Assembly: GCF_006345805.1 (NCBI RefSeq)
Contig: NC_043011.1
Coordinates: 50,542,464 to 50,606,463 of the forward strand
From: Octopus sinensis
Taxonomy: Eukaryota
Length of the DNA stretch: 64,000 nucleotides
Direction: 5' to 3'
Made by a program: the position numbers and the translations under genes. The notes under the pieces are model-generated. The model was not told the origin of the DNA and did not search any database. It saw only the letters and a list, made by a program, of their open reading frames with translations. The number at the start of each line of letters is the position of its first letter. The stretch's first letter is position 1. Shown piece by piece: positions 1 through 47,542 of this stretch.

Positions 1-150
1 CAATTTTAACGAATAATTTTACAAGTAGTTCGGTATGTAAAATGAATCATTATCGGTAAATTTATCAAAACCTAATTATGAGCATAATTATAATTAGGGT
101 TCTGCAAAATTTGTTTCACCACATAACAAAATGTAGGCTTACAATTATAT

Positions 151-240
<90 letters not shown>

Positions 241-439
241 GGAGAGAGAGAGAGAAGGGGGAGGAGAAAAGAGAGAGAGAGAGAAACCAATACATAAATA
301 CATGCCTATCACTGTTTGAGTTGCATAATAGTGGTTTTATCTCTAACTTATATTTTATATATTTATACTGTGAAATATGATTTAATACTAAGTTGAATTT
401 TTCGCTGTAAGTCTGGAGTTATACTCCCTAATAACATTA

Positions 440-473
<34 letters not shown>

Positions 474-1012
474 GCATACATACATACATACATATTTATA
501 TATGTAGATATAGATAGATTCATACATACATATATGCATATATATGTGTGTGTGCGTGTGAATTCACATACACATACGTATAGTTGTAATTTGAACATAT
601 GCAATTCATGTGTCTGTGTGTGGGGGTGAGAGTGTGTGTGGGGGTGAGTTTATGTGTGTTTGTGTGTGAGGGGGTGAGAGTGTGTGTTGGGGTGAGTGTA
701 TGTGTGTTTGTGTGTGTTGTGTGTGTGTGTGGTGTGTGTGTGTGTGGTGTGTGTTTGTGTGTGTTTGTGTGTGTTTATCTCTCATCTATTTTTCTGTATA
801 TTACTGAGGGATTTTGACGTCCAAATACTCGACCGGAATTATACTGAAATATATTCCTCGCTCCCACATATCTACAAATTCGAACATGAAACAACCATGT
901 GTATACTCTGTATGATATGAATGCGCAACAGGCAGAAACGACGGTGTTGTTACAAAAATTTAATATCGCAACAATCATTTGAGATTTTTAAAGGAAATTT
1001 CATATCTTTTAG

Positions 1013-1109
1013 GTGTCAGGGCTTATTTTAGAGAGATATGCACTAAAGAGGCAAGACGTTTCTGTCCATCTACCTTTGTACAAGTTACCAGAAGGGATTT
1101 ATTTTGCCG
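1013..1109 (+). CDS. Gene A exon 2 (97 nt, phase 1/2) of a secreted, GPI-type 6-Cys protein: (C)VRAYFREICTKEARRFCPSTFVQVTRRDLFC(R)
   Basis: Acceptor tttcatatcttttag|, donor |gtatgt, open frame, phase-compatible with neighbouring exons, same length and frame in copy B. Confidence 0.88.
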
Positions 1110-1135
1110 GTATGTATGTATGTATGTATGTATGT

Positions 1136-1214
<79 letters not shown>

Positions 1215-2400
1215 TGTTTCTTTATTAGCCACACAGGGCTGCACACAGACAGGACAAATTACAAGGTAGAGCTTTTCTTTTAAGGGTAAAAAAAGAGGGT
1301 TTGGTTTTCGATCAGAAGGGATCGGAAAGGGAAAGAAAGATGACAAAAAAAGGGGGGAATAAATTTTTTTAAAGGGGGGGAGAGGAAACAAAAATTGATC
1401 AATAGGGTCCGTTATCACAGAAATGTCAATATGAAGTGCAAAGGGGAGGACAGGTGAGGTTTACCTGTGGAAAGAAAAGCCTACGGAAAAGACCACGGTA
1501 ACCTCGGTCAATGAAGTCACATGTTATATTTCTTTTTTTTTTGCAGATAAGCAACTCTCTGTATTAATTTTTACGGTTCATAGAATCATAGGCTCAAGGA
1601 GGCTTCGTCATTCATACGTGCCATCCTTGCTACATTCACCCATCTTTTTTTAAAGCATTCACTAGACAAAACTTGCCTCTCTACTCTCACTTTCCACTTC
1701 AAGTGATACTTGAAGAAGTTGATGAGAGATTGACCAGAGAGGAAAGTGTTTGTCTCTATTCCTTTCAGGCGCGTCCACCAGATACATTCTTTCGCCATAG
1801 CCACAAGTATGATAAAAATAGCTCTTCCTTTCCGTTTGAAGGAAGGGGACGTGACGATATTAACGATAGACTCGGCTGATAAACCGACACGTCCCACACG
1901 TGACAGCAGTCGTTCGACATAAGCCCACAGGTCGGAAATTGCTGGACACTGCACGATTGCGTGCAGAGCGGTTTCGTCGCTCTGCCCGCATCTCGGGCAG
2001 GTCGTCCCCGTGTTTCTCGAGCCATGCCTATAGAGCTTATCCCGAACGGGTAGCGCTTCTCGGTAGCACTGCCAGGCCAGGGATCTCTGGAAGTTGTCCA
2101 AAGGTCCCGGCCCGAAAGTCGTTTCAAACAGGCGGGTCAGGTATTCCTCGTCGACGCCCAGGTTTGCCCCAAGATCGTCGTCGTACCTCCCCTCCACTAA
2201 TCCCCTATAGAATGCTTTGGTTGTGTTGAAGTCACTCAAGGTCGACCCGGGACGGCAGAGTTGCTTGAGAGCAACGCGACACTCGCGGTGCCATTCGCCC
2301 TTCCTCGACCTCTTTTTGATCCACGACTGCAGTTCGGTCATGGAGACGAGCTGCGGGAACGCGTGCCTCACAAACGGCGACCACACCTGTTCACCGTCGT
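1215..2400 (-). mobile_element. 5'-truncated Tx1/L1-clade non-LTR retrotransposon (ORF2 C-terminus with zf-RVT CCHC, plus 3'UTR) inside (GATA)n in gene A intron 2
   Basis: Uninterrupted frame with LAWQCYREALPVRDKL and CPRCGQSDETALHAIVQC; AATAAA just before the (ATCT)n flank; absent from the paralogous site near 10900-10985. Confidence 0.9.
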
Positions 2401-2411
2401 GACAGACAGAC

Positions 2412-2517
<106 letters not shown>

Positions 2518-3152
2518 TCTTATTGTTGCTATATGTGTTATATTTCATATGTATGCAATACTATATTGACAAATATTTGTTTTTATAAAAGCGTTTTCGT
2601 TATTAAAATGCTAGATGTATCTAGATGGATCCAAGTCGATGAAAGCAAGTATATGCATTATTTATATATTATGATGTCTTTTTGTACGACGAAATATAGA
2701 CGCAAATTTTGTCCAGTATTGATTGAAGAAATGATATCTCCGTTACCAATTCTCTCATTCTCTCCGCCGAGATATTAGCGGTTTACTGATATATATATAT
2801 ATTTCTGTCAACTAATTAGACAAAAGACAATACAAATTGTGCTAGGCAACACTCAGTTGCATATAAATAATTAGACAATTATTTTGGACAATTTTGTATT
2901 CAATTTTGTATAATTTTTCTATCGATGTTTAAAGATCTCCCACAGTTAGGTTAAATTTTCTATCTAGTTGTAGAACTATGAATTTGTTAAGTAATTTTGT
3001 TTTTAAAACTGAGTATTAACTTTGGTTTAATCTTCTTATAATTGGGAGTCATTTGGAAGGCGAGTTTGAGTCCAGAATAGAGTTTATTTAAAAATATAAG
3101 CAATACAAGACTACCTGAATATGTAATTTTCATTCATATTTTTACCTTCCAG

Positions 3153-3249
3153 TACTTTCAAGGATTTTGATAATTGTTACTCGAAACATGTACCATATAG
3201 GACAAGTTGTTCAATGCAACTCAGAAAGGACTATGATATTAAGTGTAAG
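3153..3249 (+). CDS. Gene A exon 3 (97 nt, phase 2/0): TFKDFDNCYSKHVPYRTSCSMQLRKDYDIKCK
   Basis: Acceptor tttttaccttccag|, donor aag|gtaaat, open frame conserved in copy B. Confidence 0.88.
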
Positions 3250-3878
3250 GTAAATAGTTTTCATTAAAAGTTATTTGTCTACAACAATGAGCGAGTGAGA
3301 TGCTTACGGTTTAAAAAGAATTGTTCTATTGTAAGAATATAAGACATCATTGAAATATGACATTTCTAAATATTTCAGAGAGATATGAGCAGCAGTGGTA
3401 CGATAGAGTAGTTGTATACTGTCAACTTAATGTGACAGTCCCTTTTATTTAGCCCTAGGAAGCATCAACGCTTCCTGTCGGCCTTGACACATTTCCTGTG
3501 TCCTTATGTTTACAAGGAGGAGACAAGCACACCCAATCTAAAAACAAAATAATTATTTTGCCTAAAAACACCTTTCAAGGAACAATCGATCAATGAAAGA
3601 GAGAACATGTTATTTAGTTACATTTTTATTTTCTTTCAATTGGATACTAAATAATGTGGCTTAAGACTTAACGCGATGACATAAACGTATCGAATAGCCA
3701 TGGCTGCAATATTTTTTAATAGTCTCTAACAATCTATTATGTCTTACTTGCGAGATTTTTAATCGATCATAGTGCTATGGCAGCTATATTCAGTAGAGAA
3801 CTATAAATTTCACATGTGTATATGTCTGTATATGTCTGTAATAGCAAGTATTCACGATAATTTATCATTTTCTTTCAG

Positions 3879-3902
3879 GGTGGCTCTGGCAACACATTTG
3901 GT
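3879..3902 (+). CDS. Gene A micro-exon 4 (24 nt, phase 0/0): GGSGNTFG
   Basis: Acceptor ttatcattttctttcag|, donor |gtaagc, identical in copy B. Confidence 0.82.
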
Positions 3903-4804
3903 GTAAGCAAAACATTTCTACTACCGCTGAATATTCAGTATATGACTACAACTGCATCAATTTGAAGGATTGACTTTTTTTAATTTATTATAATACGGTT
4001 GAAACATTTCTTTAATGCAAACAGCTGTCTTTTTGCTATTAGTGATCTAGTGTGGTAAACATTTTTTCAATATGGCTTCAAAAACAGAAACATAAACATA
4101 AACAGATTGTTTTTTATATAGTATTATAGAGTGTAATTTCCCTATTATTTAATTGCAAAAGATCAAAGGAAAATATTGAAAAGTCAAATTTTTAACGTCC
4201 TAACTGGAATAGGAGTGTTCATAGTAATATAAAAAAACATGCGCCATATATGTAATACATATTCCGTGTCTGTTCTAAGGGAAGTTGTAGAAAATTGAAT
4301 TATGAAACCGCATAGTTACAATAACATTATGGATAGTGTAACTTATGTTATACACGGAATATCGCGTTTTGCATAAGAATAACAGTTAAAGGAATGATGT
4401 GCTACATTTATAATACGGATACGCTAGAGTTATTCCTTGCAGTAATATTTTGAATGTATTTTAGTAAAATATGATTGACTTTAATAAGAAATATGATATA
4501 ATTGTGATGGCATTACATAGCCATCTCAAATAAAATTCTATCGAATAAATTTTCAATGACGATGCTGTTTATTACGAGAAAGCACTCGGAAGGAAAATTT
4601 TGAAGAATAGCATTATGTACATTCCTCCGAATGAACAAGGATACCATAGCAGCAGGTCCGGTAATTCCCATAGCAGGAGAAATAGCTTTAGGACAGCATT
4701 ACTCTGCTATGAATCTATCAACCATTCTACTAAACCTAGGCCTACGTCATATTTTAAAAGAATCTCTAAGCATGCCTTATATGCTAAAATATGTAACATA
4801 CACG

Positions 4805-5090
4805 AGGGTTCCAGTTGATCCGACCAACGAAAAAGCTTGCTTGTGAACTTAACATGCAAGACGCAAAGCACTTCACAATCACTTTTACCCTTAATGTAGT
4901 TGTAAGGGAGATTCAGCGTGACACAGGATGTGTTGAAGCTGGTCCCTTGAAGTACAGATACTACTCATTTTTGCTAGCCGGGTGGACCTGTGCAATGTAA
5001 AATTAGGTTTCTTGCTCAAGAACACAAAGCGTCCCTGTGAATTTAACTTACATTCGGGAGCCGAATACCCTAACCAAAAGCCTCGCGCCT
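4805..5090 (-). mobile_element. Diverged tRNA-derived SINE
   Basis: Similar to the SINEs at 19116-19496 and 35308-35635 (gagattcagcgtgacacag, cttgctcaagaacacaa). Confidence 0.7.
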
Positions 5091-5298
5091 TTACACCTTA
5101 ATATATCCTCACAAATAACATAAAATTATATGTGGGCCTTACTAATATATTTTATGCTCACAGCACCGTAAAAAAACATAGGCCAATTGTATACTAATGG
5201 AAATGCAAATAGTAGCAGACTAAACTAGCTTACCTAGATCACTATAAATGTTTGTCGATATAAAACTTTGAATAACCAAACTTTTCTGTCATTTACAG

Positions 5299-5358
5299 GT
5301 TAGGAGCCAGTCACTATTCGCAACTGCTGTTATAAATCAATTACTCGCATATATATAA
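5299..5358 (+). CDS. Gene A terminal coding exon 5: VRSQSLFATAVINQLLAYI* (hydrophobic GPI-signal-like tail)
   Basis: Acceptor cttttctgtcatttacag|, phase 0, TAA stop; AATAAA at 5662 and 5820. Confidence 0.82.
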   Translation, partial: VRSQSLFATAVINQLLAYI

Positions 5359-6141
5359 GTATATATTATGTCACTACAAGTATGTCTGAGTATTATTTTG
5401 AAGACGTATTTTAATGAGATGAGTTATAGAAGGGAATTCTTAATATTGCAAGAGATCAGCTCTACTACACACATATCTACAACTCTATCTGTGACATTGA
5501 AGATAATTTCTAATGTTCTACACTGTATGCTGTAAATTTTGATTAAAATAACTATAAGACTTCATCGATTTTTACTATGATAACTCGTGTTATTTTCATA
5601 TCGGTTTAAACGTAACATTCGAAATATTCACACCCGGACAACAATGGTGCCACACCAGCAGAATAAATAGCATTAAGAGAAGGATAAATTGTTGTACGAT
5701 TAATTTTAAGCCACATATTCTACATTAAACAAAAAGTAACATTATCGTAACGTAAACTAGAATCTGACAGACACAGTACAATAACTAGACCTATACGACA
5801 TATTATAGACCCATACCTAAATAAAGCTCACATGACTGAAACAAGTAAAAGAGTAAAAGAGTAAAGAGTATATAATATATATATATATTTATATATAGGT
5901 TAAGTAATTGAGATTCTAGTGAATTCTAAAGAATTCACATGAATATGGTCCTTAACTAGGATGCACCGGAAATCTATATGGTGTTAACCATACGACAAGT
6001 GGGGTGATTACAAATAGGAAAAAAGCAACAAGAATGGATTAAAATCTCGGTACGATTTTTTGTAGCTTATTAAAGATGTCCTCGTACAAAACGATCGTAC
6101 CGAGATTTTAATCCATTCTTGTTGCTTTTTTCCTATATATT

Positions 6142-6213
<72 letters not shown>

Positions 6214-6290
6214 AATATATCTATTTATATATATATATGTACGTATGTATATATATACATATGTGAGTGTGTGCCTGTATGTATGAATAT

Positions 6291-6322
<32 letters not shown>

Positions 6323-6582
6323 CAAACACACGCACGCACACATACACACACATATGGTTCTCAGATGAGGTCCTGATAACCTCCGTATAGAAGACATTTA
6401 GTAGTGCTCAAAAGATTGAAGTTTAATCGCCGATGTTCTTCACGGGGGATTGTTACGAAAGGTGAAGAAAAGCTATGATGGATTATCTTGAGGAGGTATA
6501 GAAGCAATTACGCGGATAAACAAACAAGACGCTTCAATTATATCAAAGAAAATAATTAGATCAAATACAAAATATGTATATA

Positions 6583-7413
6583 CAGGGGTTGGACAGAATA
6601 AGGGAAACACCAAGCATCACAGCATCATAATTTTGAATTATCTATAAACCGTCAAAAGCTTGTTTTTTGGTTTATTATTAGAGTTGCTAAATATGTTTTG
6701 CTAAAATTGCTATTTCGTTTCATATATCATCAGAAAAAGGTAATTAAAATTCATTAAAATGACGGATCTATCGGACTTTCCAAGAGGTCAAATTGTTGGT
6801 GCTCGTATGACAGGCGCTAGCGTAACGAAAACAGCCGAAATGTTTGGTGTATCAAGAAGTACTGTTTTGAGAGTAATGACAGCCTTTCAGAAAGACTGTC
6901 ATTGAAACAAAACTCCGGAAGAAAACCAAAACATTCAGATAGGGACCGTCGGACTCTTACGCGAAATGTTAGAAAGGTTCAAAAACGTGCAGTTCCCAAA
7001 ATTACTGCAGAGCTTAATGACCACCTCAGGAGCCCAGTTTCTACAAAAACCGTTCGCCTGGAGCTGAACAAAACCGGACTTCACGGGAGGGATGCAATCA
7101 GAAAACCATTACTTTCAAAAAACAAACTTTGCAAAGCGTTAAGAGTGGAGTAAAAACATATAGAATTGGTCCCTAGAGCAGTGGAAGAATGTTATTTTCT
7201 CAGATGAGTCCTCCTTTACCTTATTTCCGACCACCGACCAAGTATACGTGTGGAGACAGCCAAAAGAAGCATTTGACTCAGACTGCCTTCTTCCAACTGC
7301 TAAACATGGAGGAGGATCTGTGATGATTTGATGGGCTATATCTTGGAAATCTGCCGGGCCAATGGTTTCCCTTCATGGCAGAATTAATAGTGAAGGCTAT
7401 TTAAGCATTTTAT
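6583..7413 (+). mobile_element. Tc1-family DNA transposon, 3'-truncated and degenerate
   Basis: TA + TIR caggggttggacagaataagggaaacacc; ATG 6759 MTDLSDFPRGQIVGARMTGASVTKTAEMFGVSRSTV; HTH region and WKNVIFSDES motif with frameshifts. Confidence 0.9.
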
Positions 7414-7861
7414 GACCTTAGTCATAAATAGGTGTAGAATAAGGTCCATAATGCATTAACTAATTCGATCCAAGTCTGATTTAGTGGGCCAGAACAGTCT
7501 GTAAGAAGGCTTAGTGGAGATGTTGGGTTTGTGGTCTTTCATGCTAATAATGCATTAACTAAATAAGGTTGAAGTAAGTTTTCACGGGAAAGGAGTCAAG
7601 ATTTCCCGTTTTGTCCGCACGAAGTTTTGTCAGTGAACAGGTCGCGGTTTCAAAGTGACTATATTTTGACACTAATTAAATTTAAATGTTAAAGTGAATC
7701 TAACGGTTGTTTCTGTGTGTGTGAGTGTATGTGTGTGTGTGTGCGTGTGTGTTCTTAAATTGCATATAAACATCTTCCATGCAGCAATAGTTCTTGTTTC
7801 AGCACACGATCTCAGATCAAGTCATTTGCCATGCAAATACATCTCCGTAATATATATATAT

Positions 7862-8045
7862 AGGGAGAATTCACAAAAGAACAAAAAACGAAGACAGGTT
7901 GTGTAGAAAACAAGCAGATGTATTAGTATAACGCTCGGAAAGGGAAAAAGACTTTAACATTTCGAGCCTACGCTCTTCCACAGAAAGGAACTCAGAAAGA
8001 AACAAGAAGAGAAAATAAAGAATGTGTGGTGGTTTGCGATCTATC
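7862..8045 (-). mobile_element. Penelope-like pLTR fragment with a degenerate minimal hammerhead
   Basis: Minus strand cttt-CTGTGGA-a-gagc(gtag)gctc-GAAA-tgtt-aaag at 7952-7987. Confidence 0.5.
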
Positions 8046-8205
8046 ATGGCGGCTCTGACGAAAGTAGCATTAATTTTTGGGGGTCGTTCAATTTTTGTCA
8101 GCTGATCAATTGACCAACTGTGTAAAGCTATTAGTAACGTACCTGTAATGGCTTGTATAAACAGTTGTAAGCTAAAGTAACTTTAATTAATACATGAAGA
8201 TGTAT

Positions 8206-8252
8206 TATAATAGCACGTCATAGATCAAATTTCCATGCCTTTGTCATCAGTT
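8206..8252 (+). promoter_or_regulatory. Candidate core promoter of gene B (TATAA plus Inr-like TCAGTT)
   Basis: TATAA 8206-8210 and TCAGTT 8247-8252, about 90 nt before the ATG; spacing is somewhat longer than canonical. Confidence 0.3.
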
Positions 8253-8341
8253 GAAACACATGTTACACCATAATAAAATTACAAGTGAAATCGCTACGTG
8301 TAAGTCGACATAACATAAGGTTTTCATCACGAAATTAGACA

Positions 8342-8378
8342 ATGAAATATTTTATCCTTATTTTCCTTGTCGTTTCTT
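8342..8378 (+). CDS. Gene B exon 1 (37 nt, phase 1): signal peptide MKYFILIFLVVS(C)
   Basis: ATG, basic residue, hydrophobic core, consensus donor t|gtaagt; joins exon 2 in frame (T+GT=Cys) giving a VRA cleavage motif after residue 16. Confidence 0.85.
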
Positions 8379-8576
8379 GTAAGTAGCAATATGGTAATTA
8401 TTTCTGAATTAGCATTACTATTTGTGCGCAGAATATAGATATAAGTGATGTAATAATATCATTATTTTGCCTTTTTCTTCCTCATTCTCTGTCTCTTCAT
8501 ACCTATACACATACAAACATATGGATACATATATATATAAATGAATGCATGTACGTGCGTGAGTGTATGTATCTGT

Positions 8577-8670
<94 letters not shown>

Positions 8671-10072: not shown

Positions 10073-10235
10073 AAGGTAAAATTAATTAATCAATTAATTA
10101 TGAATAATTTTACCAAGTAGTTCGGTATGTTAAATGAACCATTATCGGTAAATTTATACAAAACTTCTATAATTATGAGCATAATTATAATTAGGGTTCA
10201 GCAAAATTTGCTTCCCCGAAATTATATATATATAC

Positions 10236-10297
<62 letters not shown>

Positions 10298-10437
10298 GAG
10301 AGAGAGAGAGACATAAACCAATACATAATAACATGCCTATCACTGTTTGAGTTGCATAATAGTGGTTTTATCTCTAATTTATATTTTAGATATTTATATT
10401 GAATTTTTCCCTGTAAGTCTGAAGCTATACGCCCTAA

Positions 10438-10491
<54 letters not shown>

Positions 10492-10801
10492 TACATACAT
10501 ACATATTTATATATATAGATATAGATAGATGCATGCATACATATATGCATATATATGTGTGTGTGCGTGTGAATTCACATACACATACGTATAGTTGTAA
10601 TTTGAATATATGCAATTCATGTGTCTGTGTGTGTTATATTATACTGAAATATATTCCTCGCTCCCACATTTCTACAAAATGAACCATGTGTATACTCTGT
10701 ATGATATGAATGATCGACAGGCAGAAACGACGGTGTTGTTACAAAAATTTGATTTCGCAACAATCATTTGAGAATTTTAAAGGAAACTTCATATCTTTTA
10801 G

Positions 10802-10898
10802 GTGTCAGGGCTTATTTTAGAGAGCAATGCACTAAAGAGGCAAGAAGTATCTGTCCATCTACCTTTGTACATGATGCCGGATGGGATTTATTTTGCAG
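10802..10898 (+). CDS. Gene B exon 2 (97 nt): (C)VRAYFREQCTKEARSICPSTFVHDAGWDLFC(S)
   Basis: Acceptor ttcatatcttttag|, donor cag|gtatgt, open frame. Confidence 0.88.
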
Positions 10899-11609
10899 GT
10901 ATGTATGTATGTATGTAAGTATGTATGTATAGATGGCTGGATGGATGGATGTATAGATGGATGGATGGATTGATGGATGGATAGTCTTATTGTTGCTATA
11001 TGTGTTATATTTCATATGTATGCAATACTATATTGACAAATATTTGTTTTTATAAAAGCGTTTTCGTTATTAAAATGTTAGATGTATTGAGATGGATCCA
11101 AGTCGATGAAAGCAAGTATATGCTTTATTTATGTATTATGATGTCTTTTTGTACGATGAAATATAGACGCACATTTTGTCCTTGAACAAATGATATCTCC
11201 GTTACCAATGTTCTCATGCTCTTGGCCGAGATTTTAGCGGTTTACTGATATATATATAATTCTGTCAACTAATTAGACAAAAGACAATACAAATTGTGCT
11301 AGGCAACACTCAGTTACATATAAATAAATAGACAATTATTTTGGACAATTTCGTATTCAATTTTGTATAATTTTTCTATAGATGTTTAAAGATCTCCGAC
11401 AGTTAGGTTAAATTTTCTATCTAGTTGTAGAACTATGAATTTGTTAAGTAATTTTGTTTTTAAAACTGAGTATTAACTTTGGTTTAATCTTCTTATAATT
11501 GGGAGTCATTTGGAAGGCGAGTTTGAGTCCAGAATAGAGTTGATTTAAAAATATAAGCAATACATGACTACCTGAATATGTAATTTTCATTCATATTTTT
11601 ACCTTCCAG

Positions 11610-11706
11610 TACTTTCATGGATTTTGATAATTGTTACTTGAAACATATAAAATATACCACAGGTTGTTCAATGCATTTCAGAATGGACTATATGTTTAAG
11701 TGTAAG
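11610..11706 (+). CDS. Gene B exon 3 (97 nt): TFMDFDNCYLKHIKYTTGCSMHFRMDYMFKCK
   Basis: Acceptor tttttaccttccag|, donor aag|gtaaat, open frame. Confidence 0.88.
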
Positions 11707-12307
11707 GTAAATAGTTTTCATTAAAAGTTATTTGTCTACAACAATGAGCGAGTGAGATGCTTACGGTTTAAAAAGAATTGTTCTATTGTTAGGATATAAA
11801 ACATCATTGAAATATTACATTTCTAAATATCTCAGAGAGATATAAGGAGCAGTGGTACGATAGAGTAGTTGTATACTGTCAACTTAATGTGACAGTCCCA
11901 TTTATTTAGCCCTAGGAAGCAGCAACGCTTCCTGTCGGCCTTGACACATTTCCTGTGTCCTTATGTTTACAAGGAGGAGACAAGCACACCCAATCTAAAA
12001 ACAAAATAATTATTTTGCCTAAAAACACCTTTCAAGGAACAATCGATCAATGAAAGAGAGAACATGTTATTTAGTTACATTTTTATTTTCTTTCAATTGG
12101 ATACTAAATAATGTGGCTTAAGACTTAACGCGATGACATAAACGTATCGAATAGCCATGGCTGCAATTTTTTTTTTAAAGTCTCTGACAATCTATTATGT
12201 CTTACTTGCAAGATTTTTAATCGATCATAGTGCTATGGCAGCTATATTCAGTAGAGAACTATAAATTTCACATGTGTATATGTCTGTATATGTCTGTAAT
12301 AGCAAGT

Positions 12308-12856
12308 TGTAAGAGTTAGCACTTCCTTCTCTAAGCTTGGATTCGAAATTGAATCCAAGAATCATCGGTCGTCAAAAACCAATGCATGTATAGGCGCGAA
12401 ATTTAAGGATCCCTTTGTTCTGTCAAAATGTGATTGATCATCTCCCTTTGACCTGCGACCTCAGCCATGTCAGGCGAAGTTCAACTGGACAAGCGCTGAC
12501 CTACTTAAGTAGAAACTCTGTTGCAGTATGTCTATGTTTCTAGCTGTTTCAAATATTATAAATACAAGGGAAAAACAGAGAAAGAAACAGAATCGCAGCT
12601 GACACACGAGCAGACAAGATTTATCTCGCCCCGCGTTTTGGAGGCGACAGAGAAATGCCTACAGGCTACTGTTTCGAATGATTCACGCACGCACCCACAT
12701 ACACAAACATATTCATCTTTAATATGTGCTCTATACAAGCAATGCGTAGCATTTGCTTACATTTGTATGTAGTGTATTTATAATCCATGTAAATAAATCC
12801 CTTTTTAATCATGAAACAATTTATGTATTTATTTATACACACACACATCCACTACA
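12308..12856 (+). mobile_element. Solo LTR (549 bp, probably Gypsy-type)
   Basis: TGTA...TACA termini; 4-bp TSD AAGT (12304-12307, 12857-12860); single AAGT at the empty site in copy A (3846-3849); TATA-like near 12554 and AATAAA at 12792. Confidence 0.9.
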
Positions 12857-12889
12857 AAGTATTCACGATAATTTATCATTTTCTTTCAG

Positions 12890-12913
12890 GGTGGCTCTGG
12901 CAACACATTTGGT
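12890..12913 (+). CDS. Gene B micro-exon 4 (24 nt): GGSGNTFG
   Basis: Acceptor ttctttcag|, donor |gtaagc, identical to copy A. Confidence 0.82.
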
Positions 12914-13760
12914 GTAAGCAAAACATTACTACCGCTGAATATTCAGTATATGACTACAACTGCATCAATTTGAAGGACTTTTTAAAATTTATTATAATAC
13001 GGATGAAACATTTCTTTAGTGCAAACAGCTGTCTTTTTGCTATTAGTGATCTAGTGTGGTAAACCTTTTTTTCAATATCGCTTCAAAGACAGAAACATAA
13101 CCATAAAACATAATGCAAAACCTCTGGAACATAAACAGATTGTTTTTCATATAGTATTATACAGTGTAATTTCCCTATTATTTAATTGCAACAGATCAAA
13201 GGAGAATATTGAAAAGTCAAATTATTAACGTCCTAACTGGAATAGGAGTGTTCATAGTAATAAAACATGCGCTATATATGTAATACATATTCCGTGTCTG
13301 GTCTAAGGGAAGTTGTAGAAAATTGCATTATGAAACCGTATAGTTACAATAACATTATGGATAGTGTAACTTATGTTATACACGGAATATCGCGTTTTGC
13401 ATAAGAATATCAGTTAAAGGAATGATGTGCTACATTTATAATACGGATACGCTAGAGTTATTCCTTGCAGTAATATTTTGAATGTACTTTAGTAAAATAT
13501 GATTGATTTTAATAAGAAATATGATATAATTGTGATGGCATTACATAGCCATCTCAAATAAAATTCTATCGAATAAATTTTCAATGACGATGCTGAGGGA
13601 CTTACTAATATATTTTATGCTCACAGCACCCTAAAAAACATAGGCAAATTGTATACTAATGGAAATGCAATTAGTAGCAGACTAAACTCGCTTACCTAGA
13701 TCACTATAAATGTTTGTCGATATAAAACTTTGAATAACCAGACTTTTCTGTCATTTACAG

Positions 13761-13820
13761 GTTAGGAGCCAGTCACTATTCGCAATTGCTGTTATAAATC
13801 AATTACTCGCATATATATAA
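13761..13820 (+). CDS. Gene B terminal coding exon 5: VRSQSLFAIAVINQLLAYI*
   Basis: Acceptor cttttctgtcatttacag|, TAA stop, AATAAA at 14123. Spliced CDS 37+97+97+24+60=315 nt = 104 aa plus stop. Confidence 0.82.
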   Translation, partial: VRSQSLFAIAVINQLLAYI

Positions 13821-16073
13821 GTATATATTATGTCACTACAAGTATGTATGAGTATTATTTTGAAGACGTTTTTTAATGTGATGAGTTATAAAAGTGAATT
13901 CCTAATATTGCAAGAGATCAGCTCTACTACACACATATCTACAACTCTATCTGTGACATTGAAGATAATTTCTAATGTTCTACACTGTATGCTGTAAATT
14001 TTGATTAAAATAACTATAAGATTTCATCGATTTTTACTATGATAACTCGTGTTATTTTCATATCGTTTTAAACGTAACATTCGAAATATTCACCCCGGAC
14101 GACAATGGTGCCACACCAACAGAATAAATAGCATTAAGAGAAGGATAAATTGTTGTACGTTTCATTTTAAGCCACAGATTCTGCATTAAACAAAAAGTAA
14201 CATTATCGTAACGTAAACTAGAATCTGACAAACACAGTACAATAACTAGACCTATACGACATATTATGACCCATACCTAAATAACAGCTAAAGACAATGA
14301 GAAGTTCTGCATCTAATTCCAATACAGACTTCTGAGAGCATAAATAATACGGAATATTCATGAAACTTTACACCGGGTTTTGGGAAATATTTCAATATGA
14401 CTTTAATAACAATTTCCTCATATAAGCCGTTATGTATGTTTGTTGTGTGGACGCTCCCAGACGATGAAGTAGGCTAGCCCAATACGTAGATATATAGGGA
14501 GATGTCTAGAAGTCGGGAGTTGAGTAGAGGTCATCGGAACGTGTTATATAACAATATTCCTATGACAGTAGTATTTAAAAGATCTTACAAAGCAAATCTA
14601 GAATGAAAACAATGTGATTCAAAATTAGCCAATCGAAAAATCATATCTTTCTGAGTTTCATCCAACCTTTTTGCTACCGTTTATGTTTATGAAATAAGTA
14701 CTAAATTCGTTATAGCAACGGAAAAGCAAATTCTCATAGGAAACTATTTAGCAGCACGGCTACTTACCTCGGCCTAAAGCAGTTTTGAGCTAACTACGCC
14801 CCGCGGCAGCTCTTAAATGGCAGGCATACTTCACAAAAATTGCCTGGTATCTTTTGAATAATTCTGTCTACATGATGATATGCCATGTCTTATAGCATCA
14901 GCTTCTAGGAAAATGTTTCCTTTGCTCGGTTTAAAACCTGTAAATCAAATATGATTAACTATTTAAGTCTAAACTCACAACCATGCGTATATGTATGAAT
15001 GTATGTGTGTATGTTATATGTTTGTATTATTTACGCCATTTTTGTTTGGTACCAACATGAATACACACACCCACATATAAAGACGTGTATGTATTTATAT
15101 ATATGTGTTTGTATACATATATATGAATGTATGTATATACGTACATATAATATATATATATATATCCTTATATATGTATGTGTATATATATACAACATAT
15201 ATATATCCTTATATATGTATGTATATATATATATATACAACATATATATATCCTTATATACATATGTATATATATATATATATATATATTATATTATATT
15301 ATATTATATTATAGTATATTATATTATATTATATTGTAGTATATCATATATATCTTAGTTTTTATCACCGTAAACAGGAAGTTTATTCAGCTATATTTTA
15401 GGTCAGAGAAAGACGAGTAAACCACTAGAAAGCTACAAAGCGTAATGGATACGCAAGGATATGAGTGGAGGAATGTCATAGAAAAGGTGGCCGAGCAAAA
15501 GCGAAAGAGTAAGAGAATCAAGAACTAGAGAGAAAGGCAAAAATAAATGGCGGAATGAATTAGGAAACAGAATGGAGAATGGGATTACAATGTCATGCAG
15601 TGAATAGCCGTTGTCCTAACGACAGGGAAGGTTATTTGCCGTAATTTTAAGAACTCCGGAAGAAAAATTACAAAGCTGAGAAAATATAGCAGAATAATAT
15701 TGCTAATGCAAGGGAATTTGAGACTCGTGAGCAAGCAACACGCAGGCTACAAATTGAAGAAAGAAGTTTTACTAATGCAAAGTCATTTCAAACAAAGGGT
15801 GAAGAAAGGGCTTTAATGGCTGCTTTGAAAACAAACAAAACAATATCGGAAGACTATTCCGCATTATAAGACAATTTGTGAATTTGAACAACCGAATATA
15901 GAGACTAGTTATATTAGCAAGATGGCTGCCAGTGATGCAAGATGGCGGCTTGATATTGAAAATATGGTGAAAGATATGGCTCAAAAGGAAAATTTTAAAC
16001 TTTGATTTATGCTGTAGTAATGTTGCTATCATTATCGTTGTTGTTGGTGTTGTTGTTGTTGGTGGTGGTCGTG

Positions 16074-19115: not shown

Positions 19116-19496
19116 GGAAGCACTCCGTCGGTTACGACGATGAGAGTTCCGGTTGATCCGACTAACGGAACAGCCTGCTTGTGAAATTACCGTGTAAGTG
19201 GCTGAGCACTCCACAGACACGTGTACCCTTAACGTACTTCTCGGGGATATTCAGCGTGACACAGAGAGTGACAAGGCCGGCCCTTTGAAGTACAGGTACA
19301 ACAGAAACAGGAAGAAAGAATGAGAGAAAGTTGTGGTGAAAGAGTACAGCAGGGATCACCACCATGCCCTGCCGGAGCCTCGTGGAGTTTTAGGTGTTTT
19401 CGCTCAATAAACACTCACAACGCCCGGTCTGGGAATCGAAACCGCGATCCTACGACCGCGAATCCGCTGCCCTAACCACTGGGCCATTGGGCCTCC
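19116..19496 (-). mobile_element. Full-length tRNA-derived SINE with 12-bp TSD
   Basis: A/B-box head at the right end; TSD aaaccatcctat at 19104-19115 and 19497-19508. Confidence 0.92.
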
Positions 19497-19796: not shown

Positions 19797-20198
19797 GCAG
19801 GAGTGGCTGTGTGGTAAGTAGCTTGTTTACCAACCGCATGGTTCCGGGTTCAGTCCCACTGCGTGGCATCTTGGGCAAGTGTCTTCTACTATAGCCTCGG
19901 GCCGACCAAAGCCTTGTGAGTGGATTTGGTAGACGGAAACTGAAAGAAGCCCGTCGTATATATGTATATATATATATATATATATGTGTGTTTGTCCCCC
20001 TAGCATTGCTTGACAACCGATGCTGGTATGTTTATGTCCCCGTTACTTAGCGGTTCGGCAAAAGAGACCGATAGAATAAGTACTGGGCTTACAAAAGAAT
20101 AAGTCCCGGGGTCGATTTGCTCGACTATAAAGGCGGTGCTGCAGCATGGCCGCAGTCAAATGACTGAAACAAGTAAAAGAGTAAAGAGTAAAAGAGTA
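19797..20198 (+). mobile_element. Full-length tRNA-derived SINE with (AAAGAGT)n tail
   Basis: Head tggctgtgtggtaag...ggttcagtccc, body cttgggcaagtgtcttc, tail tgactgaaacaagtaaaagagta. Confidence 0.92.
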
Positions 20199-25324: not shown

Positions 25325-25820
25325 CTTGTGGGGGCGCAATGGCCCAGTGGTTAGGGCAGCGGACTCGCGGTCGTAGGACCTTGGTTTCGATTCCCAGATC
25401 GGACATTGTGAGTGTACATTGAGCCAAAACACCTAAAGCTCCACGAGGCTCCGACAGGGGATGGTGGTGAACCCTGCTGTACTCTTTCACCACAACTTTC
25501 TCTCTCTCTCTTTCTTCCTGTTTCTTTTGTACCTGTATTTCAAAGGACCAGCCTTGTCGTACTCTGTGTCACACTGAATCTCCCCGAGAACTACGTTAAG
25601 GGTACACATGTCAGTGGAGTGCTCTGCCACTTGCACGTTAATAAATGAGCTGTATCGGCCTTTGCCTTTCCCTTGAATAACATCAGTGGCGTGAAGAGGG
25701 GAGGCTGGTATGCGTGGGCGACAGCTGGTCTTCTATAAACAACCTTGCCCAGACTTGTACTTCAGAGGGTAACTTTCTAGGTGCAATCCCATGGTCATTC
25801 ATGACCGAAGGAGGTCACAG
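25325..25820 (+). mobile_element. Chimeric SINE (5' part of one family joined to 3' part of another)
   Basis: 25325-25640 matches the 19116 family, 25645-25815 matches the 39072 family; flanked by an imperfect 25/26-bp direct repeat. Confidence 0.8.
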
Positions 25821-34282: not shown

Positions 34283-35790
34283 GTTCGGGATGCGTAATTA
34301 TTTGAGGACATAACTTTTGGGGTTATTGCTGCATTTTTTGCTAACTCTGTATAATCTTTGTTTCAGAAAATAATAATGCCAGAATCTAGGCTTACCCAAG
34401 AAATGAAGAGTCGTGTTGGTATTGTGCTTATAAAGGCGGAACATAGCGATTTACAAATATCTCGATTTTTAAATTTTGTCACATCTTTAACCTACAAAGT
34501 TTGTAAGGAGCGAGAGACTGAAGACAAAAACATATCACCAGTATCAAATCATAAAAAGTATTCTAAACACTCTGAAGTCTTCAGAACACCTGAATTTATT
34601 CAGCAAGTTCAACAGACCATTAATTACAATCCCAGACAGACCATGAAGTCAATTGCAAAATAGCTCCATGTGTCAGAAGGAACAGTCAGAAATGTTGTCC
34701 GCGAAGACATCAGATATAAGTCTTATACGATGTGGAGCGGTCAATTTGTCAGGAAAACCAAAAGAAAATCACTACATCAGATCTAAAAGGATCTTAATCA
34801 AATTGAAAAATCCAGCAGAAGAAGATTTGATTTAGTTTTTTCTAAAACAAGAAATACTTCAACTAAGATCAAAAAGTTAACAAAACAAATGATAGATGGT
34901 CATGTGCAAACCCTTCTGCTGTTCTAAGTGTTAAGCATACAAAATTTCCTGCAATTGACACGGTTTTAAGGGTTGTCAGCAATGAAGGATATCTGATGAC
35001 TCCTTACTTCTTTCCGCAAGGCCTTAGAATTAACTCTGCCGCCCACATTGAGGTCCTGGAAATAATTGTTAAGCACTGGATAGACAGTGTATGCAATGGA
35101 AGGCCATATGTGTTTCAGTAAGACTCAGCACTATCATACATGGCTCTAGTAACACAGGAATGGATGGCTGAAAATTTTCATGATCACATAACCCCTAACA
35201 TTTGGCCTCCTAATACCCCAGATCTCAATCCATTGGACTATTACATGTGGAGCGTTGTTGAGAAAGAGGTCAATGAAAGATTCTTTGAAAGCTGCCTTAG
35301 TCAGAATTAAAAAGACTCCGCCGGTTACGACGACGAGGGTCCCAGCTGATACGATCAACGGAACAGCTTGCTCGTGAAATTAACGTGCAAATGGCTGAGC
35401 ATTCCACAGACACGTGTACCCTTAACGTAGTTCTCGGGGATAATCAGCGTGACACAGAGAGTGACAAGGCTGACCCTTTGAAATACAAGTACAACTCATT
35501 TTTGCCAGCTGAGTGGACTGGAGCAAGGTGAAATAAAGTGTCTTGCTCAAGGACACAACGCGTCGCCGGGAATCGAACTCACAACCTTACGATCATGAGC
35601 CGAATGCCCTAACCACTAAGCCACGCGCCCTCACATAGTCAGAATAATGTCTATAATGAACCAGGACCTCTTATTTCGAGCATGTAGATGGTTTAGGTCT
35701 CATATGGAAGCAGATGTTGATGCTGAAGTTGGCTTTATTGAATAGCATTATAGAAACGGTATATTTTTATCCTCATAGCATTTTTTGATA
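34283..35790 (+). mobile_element. maT/DD37D-like Tc1/mariner transposon remnant interrupted by a SINE
   Basis: RTPEFIQQVQ...LHVSEGTVRNVVREDIRYKSY, WPPNTPDLNPLDYYMWSVVE; second copy at 42700-43635. Confidence 0.85.
35308..35635 (-). mobile_element. tRNA-derived SINE with 10-bp TSD
   Basis: TSD tagtcagaat at 35298-35307 and 35636-35645; the second transposon copy is uninterrupted near 43470. Confidence 0.92.
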
Positions 35791-39071: not shown

Positions 39072-39406
39072 TGTGAATGCGCATGGCTCAGTGGTTAGAA
39101 CGTAGAGCTTACGATCGTGAAGTTGTGAGTTCGATTCCCGGACTGGGCTGCGTGTTGTGATCTTGAGCAAGACACTTTATTTCACATTGCTCAAGTTCAC
39201 TCAGTTTTAGAAATGAGTTGTGACATCACTGGTGCCAAGCAGTATCGGCATTTGCTTTTCCCTTGGATAACATCAGTGGTGTGCAGAGGGGAGGCTGGTA
39301 TGCATGGGCGACTGCTGGCCTTCCACAAACAACCTTGCCCGGACTTGTACCTCAGAGGGTAACTTTGTAGGTGCAATCCCATGATCATTCATGACCGAAG
39401 GGGTCT
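39072..39406 (+). mobile_element. Full-length tRNA-derived SINE
   Basis: Head ggctcagtggttaga...gagttcgattccc; ends atgaccgaaggggtct. Confidence 0.92.
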
Positions 39407-42699: not shown

Positions 42700-43635
42700 T
42701 CTCTATATTCAACTACAGGTACGAACGCGAGGGAATCAGCAAAAAAATATACAAAATTGTGGATAATTCTATACCTCGAATTTATTCAGCGCAAGTTCAA
42801 CAGATCATCGATTACAATCCCAGAAAGTGCATGAAGTCAATTGCAATAGATATATCTATGTGTCAGAAGGAACAGTCAGAAATGTTGCCCACGAAGACAT
42901 CAGATATAAGTCTTATATGATGAGAATTGGTCAATTTGTCACAAAAAGCAAAAGAAAATCACTATATCAGATGTAAAAGGCTCTTGAGCAAAATTGAAAC
43001 ATCTAGAGGAAGAAAATTTGATCAGTTTTTTTTTTTCTAAAACGAGAAAAACGTCGACGAAGATCAAAAGGTTAACAGAAGAAATTATAGATGGTTATGT
43101 CAGACCCTTCTGAAGTTCCAAGTGTTATGCATACAAACCTTCCTGCAACTGTCATGGTTTTAAGGGTTGCCAGCAATGAAGGACATGTAACGCCTCCTTA
43201 CTTCTTTCCACAAGGCCTTAGAGTTAACTATGCCGCCCACATTGAGGTCCTGGAAATAATTGTTAAGACAGTGGAAGGCCATATTTGTTTCAGAAAGACT
43301 CTGCGCTATTACACATGGCTCTAGTAACACAAGAATGGATGGCTGAAAATAACCCCTAACATTTGTCCTCCTAATTGCCTAGATCTCAATCCATTGGACT
43401 ATTACATGTGGAGCGTTGTTGAGTGAGATGTCAATAAACACGCCCGTAACGCCATAGATTTTTTGAAAGCTGCCATAGTCCTAGTAATGTCCAAAATGAA
43501 CCAGGTCCACTTGATTCGAGCATGTAGATGATTTAGATCTCATATAGAAGCAGTTGTTGAAGCTGAAAGTGGCTTTATTGAATAACATTATAGAAAAGAA
43601 GGTTTATTTTTATCCTCATAGCATTTTTTGATAAA
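42700..43635 (+). mobile_element. Second maT/DD37D-like transposon remnant
   Basis: Colinear with 34550-35790; VMHTNLPATVMVLRVASNEGHVTPPYFFPQGLRVN. Confidence 0.85.
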
Positions 43636-44267: not shown

Positions 44268-44346
44268 GAGTGAGAGAGCAGTTCATGCCATCAAAGTGAC
44301 ACTGGGGTAAAATATACGAAGCCCAATATACCCATCATGACTACCC

Positions 44347-44379
<33 letters not shown>

Positions 44380-44399
44380 AGTATTCTGTATAGCATTTG

Positions 44400-44516
44400 A
44401 CGCTACAGAAGACGATTGCATGACGACGACAACGACGTTGATGGTGATAATTGTGATGACGACAACAATAGTGATGAGAATGATAATGATGATGATGATG
44501 ATAATGATGACGCTAC

Positions 44517-44557
<41 letters not shown>

Positions 44558-44864
44558 ATGACTATGGTGATTATTGACGATGTTATGTTGTAATCATTAC
44601 TGTTGTTCTTTTTCTTATTGTTAACGATGGTTTTTCGATGATGACAACGACGACGACGACGATGATGACGATTACGGCGACGACGAAAACGACGATAATA
44701 ATAGACGTTGTCGTATCGTAATTATTACGGTCACTGTTTTTTTTATTATGGTTGTTGACAATGATTTTGATGATGATGATCATCATCATCATCATCTTGA
44801 TGATGATCATGATCGTGATGGTAGTGGTGGCAGTGGTGGTGACAACGACTATGGTGACGACGAC

Positions 44865-44904
<40 letters not shown>

Positions 44905-45100
44905 TTGATGATGGTGATGGTGATGGTGATGGTGATGATGATGATGATGATGATGTTGATGATGGTGATGGTGATGGTGATGATGATGATGATGATGATG
45001 TTGATGATGGTGATGGTGATGGTGATGATGATGATGATGATGATGACGAGGACGTCAACGACATCTACGGCGACAATAATGATGATGATGATGATGGTGG

Positions 45101-45141
<41 letters not shown>

Positions 45142-47204: not shown

Positions 47205-47245
47205 GCACAAGCACTCACCTACATACACACACACACGCGCTCACA

Positions 47246-47296
<51 letters not shown>

Positions 47297-47494: not shown

Positions 47495-47542
<48 letters not shown>

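Follow-up and report, generated by a model that had tools for sequence, protein, structure and literature searches.

An unannotated tandem pair of fast-diversifying six-cysteine mini-protein genes in Octopus sinensis, and their unsupported likeness to neuritin

The window, by which we mean the whole 64,000-nt stretch of Octopus sinensis DNA that was analysed, carries two copies, and only two, of a gene for a small six-Cys protein. The exons of these copies (A and B) and the segmental duplicates in which they lie are listed below:

11-5828, forward strand: duplicate unit A (segmental), pairing with 10102-14289 through collinear blastn blocks of 85-96% identity and repeat families D8-D11, D13 and D16
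1013-1109, forward strand: copy A exon 2, encoding VRAYFREICTKEARRFCPSTFVQVTRRDLFC
3153-3249, forward strand: copy A exon 3, encoding (R)TFKDFDNCYSKHVPYRTSCSMQLRKDYDIKCK
3879-3965, forward strand: copy A exon 4 in its read-through form, encoding GGSGNTFGVSKTFLLPLNIQYMTTTASI and a stop, with an internal donor after 3902
5299-5358, forward strand: copy A alternative exon 5, encoding VRSQSLFATAVINQLLAYI and a stop
8192-8341, forward strand: copy B proximal promoter and 5'UTR, where a TATA-like AATTA(C/T)AA and the E-box CACGTG occur
8342-8378, forward strand: copy B exon 1, coding part (37 nt, phase 1), encoding MKYFILIFLVVS plus T, which is most of the signal peptide
10102-14289, forward strand: duplicate unit B (segmental), the counterpart of unit A
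10802-10898, forward strand: copy B exon 2, encoding (C)VRA/YFREQCTKEARSICPSTFVHDAGWDLFC, which covers Cys1-3 and the last residues of the signal peptide; acceptor ttttag, donor gtatgt
11610-11706, forward strand: copy B exon 3, encoding (S)TFMDFDNCYLKHIKYTTGCSMHFRMDYMFKCK with Cys4-6; acceptor ccttccag, donor gtaaat
12890-12973, forward strand: copy B exon 4 in its read-through form, encoding GGSGNTFGVSKTLLPLNIQYMTTTASI and a stop; acceptor ttctttcag
12890-12913, forward strand: copy B exon 4 in its short form, with the internal donor GGT/GTAAGC after 12913
13761-13820, forward strand: copy B alternative exon 5, encoding VRSQSLFAIAVINQLLAYI and a stop, a GPI-signal-like hydrophobic tail; acceptor catttacag

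The gene model of copy B has four or five exons, and in both copies the splice sites are canonical AG/GT and the frames intact. The copy B precursor is 104 aa long and consists of a signal peptide, a six-Cys domain of ~64 aa and a C-terminal tail. Its exon 1 is the sole upstream ATG-ORF that is hydrophobic and has a GTAAGT donor in the right phase, and in the O. bimaculoides paralogues, too, this exon has 37 nt and a donor of the cgtaagtag type. When exon 1 is joined to exon 2 the product reads C-VRA/YFREQC, and the putative signal peptide MKYFILIFLVVSCVRA, judged by rule, combines a hydrophobic core with V at -3 and A at -1. At the next junction, exon 2 ends in ...TTT TGC AG/gtatgt and exon 3 starts with ccag/T ACT TTC ATG GAT TTT GAT AAT TGT TAC, which gives FCSTFMDFDNCY after splicing; the corresponding junction of copy A (TGC CG/gt plus T ACT TTC AAG...) gives FCRTFKDFDNCY. 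The cysteine strings quoted in the original prediction for this DNA are therefore present only in the spliced copies A and B, across the exon 2/3 junctions, and not in contiguous DNA. Two further features named there were also recovered: the last Cys followed by KGGSGN forms across the exon 3/4 junction of copy B, where exon 3 ends AAG TGT AAG/gtaaat and exon 4 opens GGT GGC TCT GGC AAC, and the signal peptide ending in VRA is split over exons 1 and 2. Position 12913, at which that prediction ended, is the internal donor of copy B exon 4, and in the O. bimaculoides orthologue RefSeq model P0126 splices at the equivalent donor. The orthologue of copy B exon 5 is the final exon of O. bimaculoides XP_052830261 (VRSQSLFATAAITLLLTHI and a stop).

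Copy A (1013-5358) lies inside a tandem duplicate of ~5.8 kb. No first exon was found for it within 1-1011, and its exon 1 is expected to the left of the window, ~2.2-2.5 kb upstream. Two of its introns carry retroelement insertions. The exon 2 products of the two copies share 75% amino-acid identity, exon 3 differs at about 14 of 97 nt beside a flanking intron that is 97.2% identical, and exon 4 shows zero substitutions and one in-frame 3-nt indel. Copy B could be chimeric, given that its predicted exon 1 lies outside the duplicated block and is orthologous to a different O. bimaculoides first exon (L002:18224). Weak tblastn matches elsewhere in the window, at 46412-46447 and 53073-53144, have the wrong Cys pattern and were set aside as chance, and neither an Rfam nor a tRNA scan of the window gave a match.

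To look for relatives, an exhaustive HMMER search compared a profile of copies A and B with 1.84 billion representative proteins. Four of the six matches are O. bimaculoides proteins, namely P0122 (E = 6.8e-9), P0123 (3.4e-8), P0124 (1.5e-7) and P0126 (7.2e-5), and the other two, a 1530-aa repeat surface protein (P0121) and a repeat translation (P0125), were judged spurious from their sequences. These E-values, together with the intact frames and the AG/GT sites conserved in A and B, argue firmly that this is a real gene, far beyond chance. A family profile run against 5.8 billion clusters retrieved five proteins only, with E = 1e-37 to 7e-16. The relatives are products of three uncharacterized genes, LOC128249797 (XP_052830261.1), LOC128249758 (XP_052830203.1/204.1) and LOC128249826 (XP_052830327-329), all located on O. 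bimaculoides chromosome CM046618.1. Judged from these matches, copies A and B can be assigned to the LOC128249797/249758/249826 family, which appears, so far, to be restricted to Octopus. No protein identical or nearly identical to that of the octopus gene turned up in the searched collections, and a word-indexed homology search with mature copy B returned no candidates from the protein collections.

The LOC128249797 locus is syntenic with the window at 81-92% nucleotide identity and is the counterpart of copies A and B; window positions 2445-8612 are collinear with L002 12686-18485 of O. bimaculoides. The alternative exon 5 is found there as well, whereas the locus holds one gene body against two in the window. 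In addition, the first donor of the O. bimaculoides orthologue has changed from GT to CT and its exon-2 acceptor from AG to AA, and its truncated read-through tail has a 7-nt deletion. The damage to the exon-1 donor and the exon-2 acceptor suggests that members of this subfamily can decay. In the O. bimaculoides RefSeq models, either exons from adjacent paralogues are combined or the signal exon is missing.

In an alignment of eight members, the six Cys are the sole invariant residues, with the spacing C-x7-C-x12..14-C-x8-C-x7/10-C-x11-C, and the signal peptide and the tail are conserved. Common to the family are a signal of the form MK[YC]xI[FI]IF..., a tail of the form VG[VI]SKxFLLPLS[IL]QY[MI]TT, a first coding exon of 37 nt and a split codon after Cys3. 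By comparison, the O. bimaculoides members are only 30-45% identical to copies A and B at the amino-acid level in the mature domain. A block of ~150 nt upstream of the gene is also common to the family of the window copies and the O. bimaculoides members. When ~150 nt of upstream sequence plus exon 1 were aligned from the window and from O. bimaculoides loci L001/L002, mean column identity in the promoter region was 80% across eight family first exons (aligned segments of ~200 nt), and this promoter/first-exon block is more conserved than the mature coding exons.

The substitutions that separate the two window copies follow the opposite course in the mature domain. Of the 194 nt of exons 2-3, 25 are different between the copies, compared with 53 of 1846 nt (2.9%) in the non-coding flanks (Fisher p = 1.2e-8), and these exons contain 20 nonsynonymous codon changes against ~0.7 synonymous ones (dN 0.17, dS 0.019, dN/dS about 9). 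The test for dN/dS > 1 alone gives p = 0.045, a modest value because synonymous sites are few. Exon substitutions are 4-5 times denser than intron ones and nearly all are replacements, and they leave all Cys in place and create zero stops, while the net charge goes from +6.8 in copy A to +1.0 in copy B. Relative to the O. bimaculoides orthologue, dN reaches 0.66-0.70, and syntenic non-coding DNA differs by ~8-19%.

Two C-terminal tails can be read from the gene. The read-through protein ends 28 residues past the last Cys, and in copy B this tail is the one conserved family-wide and used in RefSeq models P0122-P0124. The exon-5 isoform would instead continue with GGSGN, a run of small residues, followed by a spacer of 8 aa and a hydrophobic end of 14 aa that is interrupted by N-Q. 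The last 14 residues of the exon 5 tail have a mean Kyte-Doolittle hydropathy of 2.07, compared with 0.54 in the read-through tail and 1.69 in neuritin. The paralogues g1 and g2 have no internal donor and make the read-through tail only, which in g1 ends NEGYAVETFL. A GPI-like tail can arise only if exon 5 is used, and its layout and hydropathy would allow GPI anchoring, albeit through a hydrophobic stretch that is short (14 aa). A possible switch between GPI-anchored and soluble forms, made by alternative splicing at the 3' end, would, if confirmed, be a neat piece of regulation.

For the fold, AlphaFold2 with a seven-sequence alignment returned helices at 2-29, 40-57 and 63-75 and a disordered tail, with a mean pLDDT of 73.7 and 78-89 in the domain; the model rests on these seven sequences, and one built from A and B only reached pLDDT 35 and was discarded. 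The domain is predicted to be all-alpha, with three helices, and not the three-finger beta-sheet of Ly6 type against which the original prediction had asked its idea to be weighed. A Foldseek search with the model of the PDB, a database that includes RGM N-domain structures, gave a best E of 2.9, TM <= 0.3 and zero RGM chains; the query kept the signal helix as well as the disordered tail, and the method is weak for tiny helical bundles. Sequence searches of the PDB, with A and B or with the family profile, returned an EndoAI antitoxin, RnfA and a melatonin receptor, all chance matches at E >= 0.5. Saposin-like, insulin-like, insect OBP, Ly6/three-finger and Aplysia attractin folds were also rejected, as their Cys patterns do not fit the spacing and they are absent from the Pfam scan.

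The reading that we favour, and consider probable, is that the locus encodes an octopus-restricted, diversifying, tandem-duplicated helical mini-protein, secreted or GPI-anchored, that is not a relative of neuritin. Each gene would be expressed as a precursor of ~104 aa, whose 16-residue signal peptide would lead it into the secretory pathway and be cleaved before YFREQC. The remaining domain of ~64 aa would form a bundle of three short helices and, since each helix has two Cys within it or at its edge, three disulfides would staple the bundle. The C-terminus would be set by 3' splicing: reading through exon 4 would yield the weakly hydrophobic family-wide tail ...GVSKTLLPLNIQYMTTTASI, as a soluble form or a C-terminal propeptide, and use of the internal donor at 12913 with exon 5 would yield GGSGN, the 8-residue spacer and LFAIAVINQLLAYI, in a GPI-signal layout that would tether the protein to the outer membrane leaflet. 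The loops and helix surfaces between the fixed Cys would be the working (binding) surface, under strong diversifying selection, with promoter, signal peptide, Cys scaffold and tail preserved meanwhile. Such a pattern agrees with a recognition ligand, secreted or at the surface, that co-evolves with prey, predator, pathogen or mate, and does not fit a conserved neurotrophic factor. An analogy of architecture is offered by the Er pheromones of the ciliate Euplotes, very small three-helix bundles of ~40 aa, stapled by three disulfides, which act as highly polymorphic extracellular recognition signals, although their Cys pattern differs and homology is not expected.

Conotoxin-type gene superfamilies combine a conserved signal and non-mature region with a hypervariable mature part on an invariant Cys framework, and the eight-member alignment has the same layout of conservation. 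One may argue from this that the octopus genes encode secreted effector precursors of the venom, antimicrobial or pheromone type, in which signal and C-terminal tail are removed and the hypervariable core alone is released, and that the exon-5/GPI form is minor or an annotation artefact. Tandem duplication, the dN/dS of about 9 and the charge shift between copies (+6.8 vs +1.0) agree with such precursors, as do g1 and g2, whose sole tail, being too polar, would not serve as a GPI signal. However, obvious cleavage sites, dibasic or other, are absent between domain and tail, searches of Pfam, the PDB and the 1.84 billion proteins revealed zero similarity to described toxin, antimicrobial peptide or pheromone families, and exon 5 has an intact frame and a good acceptor and is conserved in A, B and the orthologue. 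The likeness to conotoxin-type superfamilies is one of evolutionary mode only (tandem duplicates, fixed Cys, a mature region faster than introns) and involves no relation in sequence or structure; moreover, the conserved extra region here is C-terminal rather than an N-terminal propeptide, and the possible GPI anchor would be atypical of a toxin. We regard an effector precursor of this kind as unlikely.

The original prediction had proposed a relative or analogue of a neurite-outgrowth fold. Its descriptive half is sound: the protein is compact, six-Cys and of secreted type (a signal peptide and a ~64-aa domain, with the Cys invariant in eight members), it evolves fast, with exons diverging faster than flanking DNA, and its outer Cys spacings are shorter than those of neuritin (x7/x13/x11 here, x9/x24/x27 there). 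The kinship half fails in the Pfam and hhalign comparisons and gains no support from Foldseek, an outcome that the prediction itself had set against kinship. The corresponding reading would be that of a true but extremely diverged and miniaturised relative of neuritin and/or the RGM N-domain, acting as a GPI-anchored neuronal surface ligand with three helices and three disulfides. On paper the architecture matches, since octopus protein and neuritin/CPG15 (NRN1, PF15056) both have a signal peptide, a small six-Cys domain and small residues followed by a hydrophobic, possibly GPI-directing tail. Both also contain a central C-x8-C, followed by x7-C in most octopus paralogues: the exact C-x8-C-x7-C occurs in five of eight members, as in NRN1 and RGMA/B, where position +3 is aromatic or hydrophobic and position +6 hydrophobic, and hhalign sets this module in register in every pairing. 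The RGM N-domain is described as three alpha-helices tied together by three disulfides (PMC7354924), and the octopus domain, with its six Cys and three predicted helices, resembles it (PF06535; PDB 4UHY, 4UI0, 6Z3G-J) in that same spacing.

Nevertheless, the profile comparisons are non-significant. Against 24 vertebrate neuritins, hhalign gave a probability of 1.1% for A and B (0.049, reported both as E and as P) and of 0.13% for the eight members (0.43, likewise), a score that falls as paralogues are added, and the alignments span only 19-27 columns around C-x8-C; against the N-domains of RGMA and RGMB the probability was 0.4% (E 0.15). In hmmscan the eight members had zero matches to Pfam NRN1 or RGM_N even at E <= 10, whereas the same library, as a positive control, assigned PF15056 to every true neuritin match. 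The Foldseek search, within the scope given above, listed no RGM match either. Furthermore, NRN1 and the RGM N-domain are undetectable to each other by the identical hhalign method, so their common spacing has no demonstrated phylogenetic meaning, and the C-x8-C-x7-C that remains shared with the octopus family is best treated as a lead, not as evidence.

The finer resemblances do not extend to the family. VRA, DFDNC and GGSGN are private to copies A and B, where the match of VRA, DF and GSGN to neuritin would be due to chance; the paralogues have ILA/VSS/VKA, YQMLWKC/FEGFVKC/YPQFQKC and NYHGH/VLWN/KSGD in their place. Neuritin has the spacing C-x9-C-x24-C-x8-C-x7-C-x27-C, with which the octopus family agrees in the central module only, and a domain of ~88 aa against ~64 aa. 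The invariant neuritin motifs YW..FH and GSLF.LC are absent from the octopus family. Neuritin also keeps 74% mean column identity across vertebrates, in contrast to a hypervariable, multicopy, octopus-only family, and the GPI-like tail of the octopus gene depends on an alternative exon, unlike that of neuritin. As for RGM, the Cys appear to be distributed otherwise among the helices: Cys5 opens helix 3 in the octopus model, but in RGM it precedes the RGD that is assigned, in the paper cited, to the short alpha2-alpha3 linker. The RGM N-domain, moreover, heads a protein of ~400 aa with a GDPH autocleavage/vWD-like C-terminal region, which the octopus protein does not have. A search of the literature yielded nothing relevant on neuritin in cephalopods or invertebrates, or on Cys-rich tandem families described from octopus. 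The neuritin likeness is not beyond chance and looks like chance on this sequence evidence, and its best explanation is convergence on a generic disulfide-stapled helix layout plus chance motifs; we hold true kinship to be very unlikely. Also very unlikely is the broader idea that the family is a miniature, fast-diversifying offshoot of an ancient C-x8-C-x7-C fold with three helices and three disulfides, also the source of neuritin and the RGM N-domain, which toggles between GPI and soluble forms by 3' splicing and represents a cephalopod-specific expansion of neuronal guidance or plasticity ligands.

It is likewise very unlikely that copies A and B are decaying or never-expressed relics with incidental open frames: the gene is unannotated, no matching protein is found in the collections, the syntenic O. 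bimaculoides gene has broken splice sites and a 7-nt tail deletion, and two copy A introns carry retroelements, but neutral decay would produce equal rates and hit Cys and stop codons, whereas every exon is open and every splice site canonical in both copies, the single indel is in frame, the promoter is conserved, and exon changes, mostly replacements and several times denser than those of introns, spare the Cys and create no stop.

In summary, the preferred reading of an octopus-restricted, diversifying mini-protein corrects the record, in that the likeness to neuritin and RGM is unsupported and a neuritin-like annotation unwarranted. Cephalopod genomes are rich in lineage-restricted genes of unclear role, and this gene pair is a clean example of them. 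The pair is unannotated here, and its family is known only as 'uncharacterized LOC' entries of one other octopus. Its core of ~60 residues evolves several times faster than the adjacent introns, a signature that marks co-evolving interfaces in venom, immunity, reproduction and chemical communication, and the family is thus a good candidate for expression and binding studies.

The segment 10861-12913 is part of a spliced + strand gene, the second (copy B) of two tandem copies of a gene for a small secreted six-cysteine protein, in eukaryotic, AT-rich window DNA that is full of microsatellites and in which no RNA genes were found.

Exons of copies A and B in the window
8342-8378, + strand: copy B exon 1, MKYFILIFLVVS plus one base, donor gtaagt
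10802-10898, + strand: copy B exon 2, end of the signal peptide and Cys1-3, ttttag...gtatgt
11610-11706, + strand: copy B exon 3, Cys4-6, ccttccag...gtaaat
12890-12973, + strand: copy B exon 4, tail and stop TGA, acceptor ttctttcag
13761-13820: copy B exon 5, VRSQSLFAIAVINQLLAYI and stop
1013-1109, 3153-3249, 3879-3965: copy A exons
5299-5358: copy A exon 5, VRSQSLFATAVINQLLAYI and stop

The predicted product of copy B has 104 aa (MKYFILIFLVVSCVRAYFREQCTKEARSICPSTFVHDAGWDLFCSTFMDFDNCYLKHIKYTTGCSMHFRMDYMFKCKGGSGNTFGVSKTLLPLNIQYMTTTASI). The strings singled out by the original prediction, FCSTFMDFDNCY and FCRTFKDFDNCY, are both found in copies A/B, as are the K-GGSGN after the last cysteine and the signal peptide ending in VRA. 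Copy A sits in a tandem segmental duplicate of ~5.8 kb (11-5828 vs 10102-14289), and its first exon is expected to the left of the window. The duplicated block does not include copy B exon 1, whose orthologue in Octopus bimaculoides is a different first exon (18224 in L002, the LOC128249797 locus), and thus copy B may be a chimera.

The copies also differ in their repeats. An insertion of ~1.27 kb in copy A intron 2 (1196-2461), absent from copy B, carries an ORF (1589-2548, - strand) matching Pfam zf-RVT (PF13966, E 1.3e-7) and is therefore a 3' fragment of a non-LTR retrotransposon. In addition, copy A intron 4, between exons 4 and 5, holds a SINE-like dispersed repeat (4567-5130) that copy B lacks, with relatives at 19122-19302, 35315-35629 and 25529-25641 (- strand). 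Other repeats, dispersed or segmental and 80-91% identical (34660-35073 vs 42850-43267; 19879-20119 vs 57965-58205; 25648-25811 vs 39238-39401), bear no relation to the six-cysteine family. An imperfect trinucleotide repeat of ~1 kb (44340-45430, period 9-15, family D5) yields long pseudo-ORFs of poly-Asp and poly-Ile, and GC skew spikes there at 0.376; the N run at ~47100-47210 is an assembly gap that places an X in ORF 47085-47549.

The gene, so far unannotated, joins an uncharacterised family restricted to octopus as a new member. A word-indexed homology search found no relatives; an exhaustive HMMER search with a profile of A and B across 1.84 billion representatives found four true ones (E 6.8e-9 to 7.2e-5), all of them O. 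bimaculoides "uncharacterized protein" entries (LOC128249758, LOC128249826, LOC128249797) on a single chromosome, CM046618.1. Two further matches were repeat proteins and were judged spurious. The family profile, run against 5.8 billion clusters, added one extra isoform and nothing more. L002 and the window align collinearly (81-92% nucleotide identity), and therefore copies A and B are the counterparts of LOC128249797; 8 Mb away, a tandem array (L001) holds at least four family members. Across eight members reconstructed from exons and splice sites, only the six cysteines are invariant (C-x7-C-x12..14-C-x8-C-x7/10-C-x11-C) and mature domains share only 30-45% identity, while the signal exon and a tail, VG[VI]SKxFLLPLS[IL]QY[MI]TT, are conserved. 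Moreover, ~150 nt upstream of the ATG (8192-8341 in the window, and at the L001 and L002 first exons) are conserved in all eight paralogues, at a level above that of the mature coding exons: aligned windows of ~200 nt, exon 1 included, average 80% column identity. The block includes an E-box, CACGTG, and a TATA-like element, AATTATAA, and its conservation suggests shared tissue-specific regulation.

In L001 (CM046618.1:49203989-49238299), the RefSeq "isoforms" of LOC128249758 and LOC128249826 mix exons from adjacent tandem paralogues, XP_052830204 opens by translating the conserved exon-1 region out of frame, and the array contains orphan first exons (5178-5315 and 17686) besides its four or more separate genes. 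LOC128249797 (L002 7841-7885, ~10030, 14126-14185) has a changed exon-1 donor (GT>CT) and exon-2 acceptor (AG>AA) and a 7-nt deletion truncating the read-through tail, and the RefSeq model for it lacks a signal peptide, beginning at an internal ATG. The copy may be decaying, or the model may be wrong. This splice-site and tail damage shows birth-and-death turnover in the subfamily.

The exons are real coding sequence under strong diversifying selection. Between A and B, 25 of 194 nt differ in exons 2-3, against 53 of 1846 nt in flanking introns and downstream DNA (Fisher p = 1.2e-8), with replacements in twenty codons and ~0.7 synonymous changes (dN 0.17, dS 0.019, ratio ~9; binomial test of the ratio alone p = 0.045). 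None falls at a cysteine or creates a stop, and exon 4 has no substitutions and one 3-nt in-frame indel. The replacements concentrate in loops 36-40 and 58-63 and on helix 3, and shift net charge from +6.8 (A) to +1.0 (B). Against the O. bimaculoides gene, dN reaches 0.66-0.70 where syntenic non-coding DNA differs by ~8-19%.

A likeness to neuritin (NRN1) and the RGM N-domain, as originally predicted, found no profile match. A Pfam scan of the eight members at E <= 10 returned neither NRN1 nor RGM_N. Of 255 neuritins retrieved, 24 from mammals to sharks were aligned; hhalign gave a probability of 1.1% (E 0.049) for A plus B, dropping to 0.13% (E 0.43) for the eight-member profile, over only 19-27 columns around C-x8-C. 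The family scored 0.4% against the RGMA and RGMB N-domains (checked against PDB 4UHY and taken from the 6Z3M chain alignment, respectively), and NRN1 against the RGM N-domain was equally undetectable (0.07%). VRA, DFDN and GGSGN occur in A/B alone within the family. Most octopus members share C-x8-C-x7-C with neuritin and the RGM N-domain, and hhalign sets it in register in all three pairings, none significant (0.07-0.4%); this residual likeness, the spacing plus hydrophobic residues at +3 and +6, is generic for a cysteine-stapled helix.

An AlphaFold2 model built with seven sequences (mean pLDDT 73.7; domain 78-89) predicts three helices, the first reaching residue 29 and the others spanning 40-57 and 63-75, with the tail disordered, and a beta or three-finger fold is therefore not supported. 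The RGM N-domain is likewise described as three helices with three disulfides (PMC7354924), matching the picture predicted for the octopus domain. Foldseek against the PDB returned only matches with E >= 2.9 and TM <= 0.3, no RGM chain among them, at a sensitivity limited by the tiny bundle and the included signal helix and tail. The original prediction is partly supported: the picture of a compact, helical, cysteine-tied, fast-evolving and possibly GPI-anchored protein stands, without demonstrable kinship or structural match to neuritin or RGM-N.

The end coordinate of the original prediction, 12913, coincides with an internal donor (GGT|GTAAGC) within copy B exon 4, and a short exon 5 with a good acceptor (catttacag) lies downstream of both copies. 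For the O. bimaculoides counterpart, RefSeq model XP_052830261 splices from exactly this donor to exon 5; other members lack the donor (GGG ATA or GGA ATA instead), and their RefSeq models read through exon 4. The exon-5 end resembles a GPI signal in layout: the small residues GGSGN are followed by a spacer of 8 aa and a hydrophobic end of 14 aa. Its mean Kyte-Doolittle hydropathy is 2.07, against 0.54 for the read-through tail and 1.69 for neuritin's final 14 residues. Judged by layout and hydropathy, GPI anchoring is therefore possible for the exon-5 isoform only.

In the mechanism considered most likely, the precursor would enter the ER and lose its signal after VRA, and the ~64-aa core would fold into a bundle of three helices, stapled by as many disulfides. 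Splicing at the 3' end would then set its fate: exon 5 would give a GPI-anchored core, and read-through a secreted core or one with the conserved C-terminal extension. The variable loops and helix faces would bind an ever-changing partner, and candidate interfaces for this octopus protein include prey or predator, microbes, gametes and conspecific signals.
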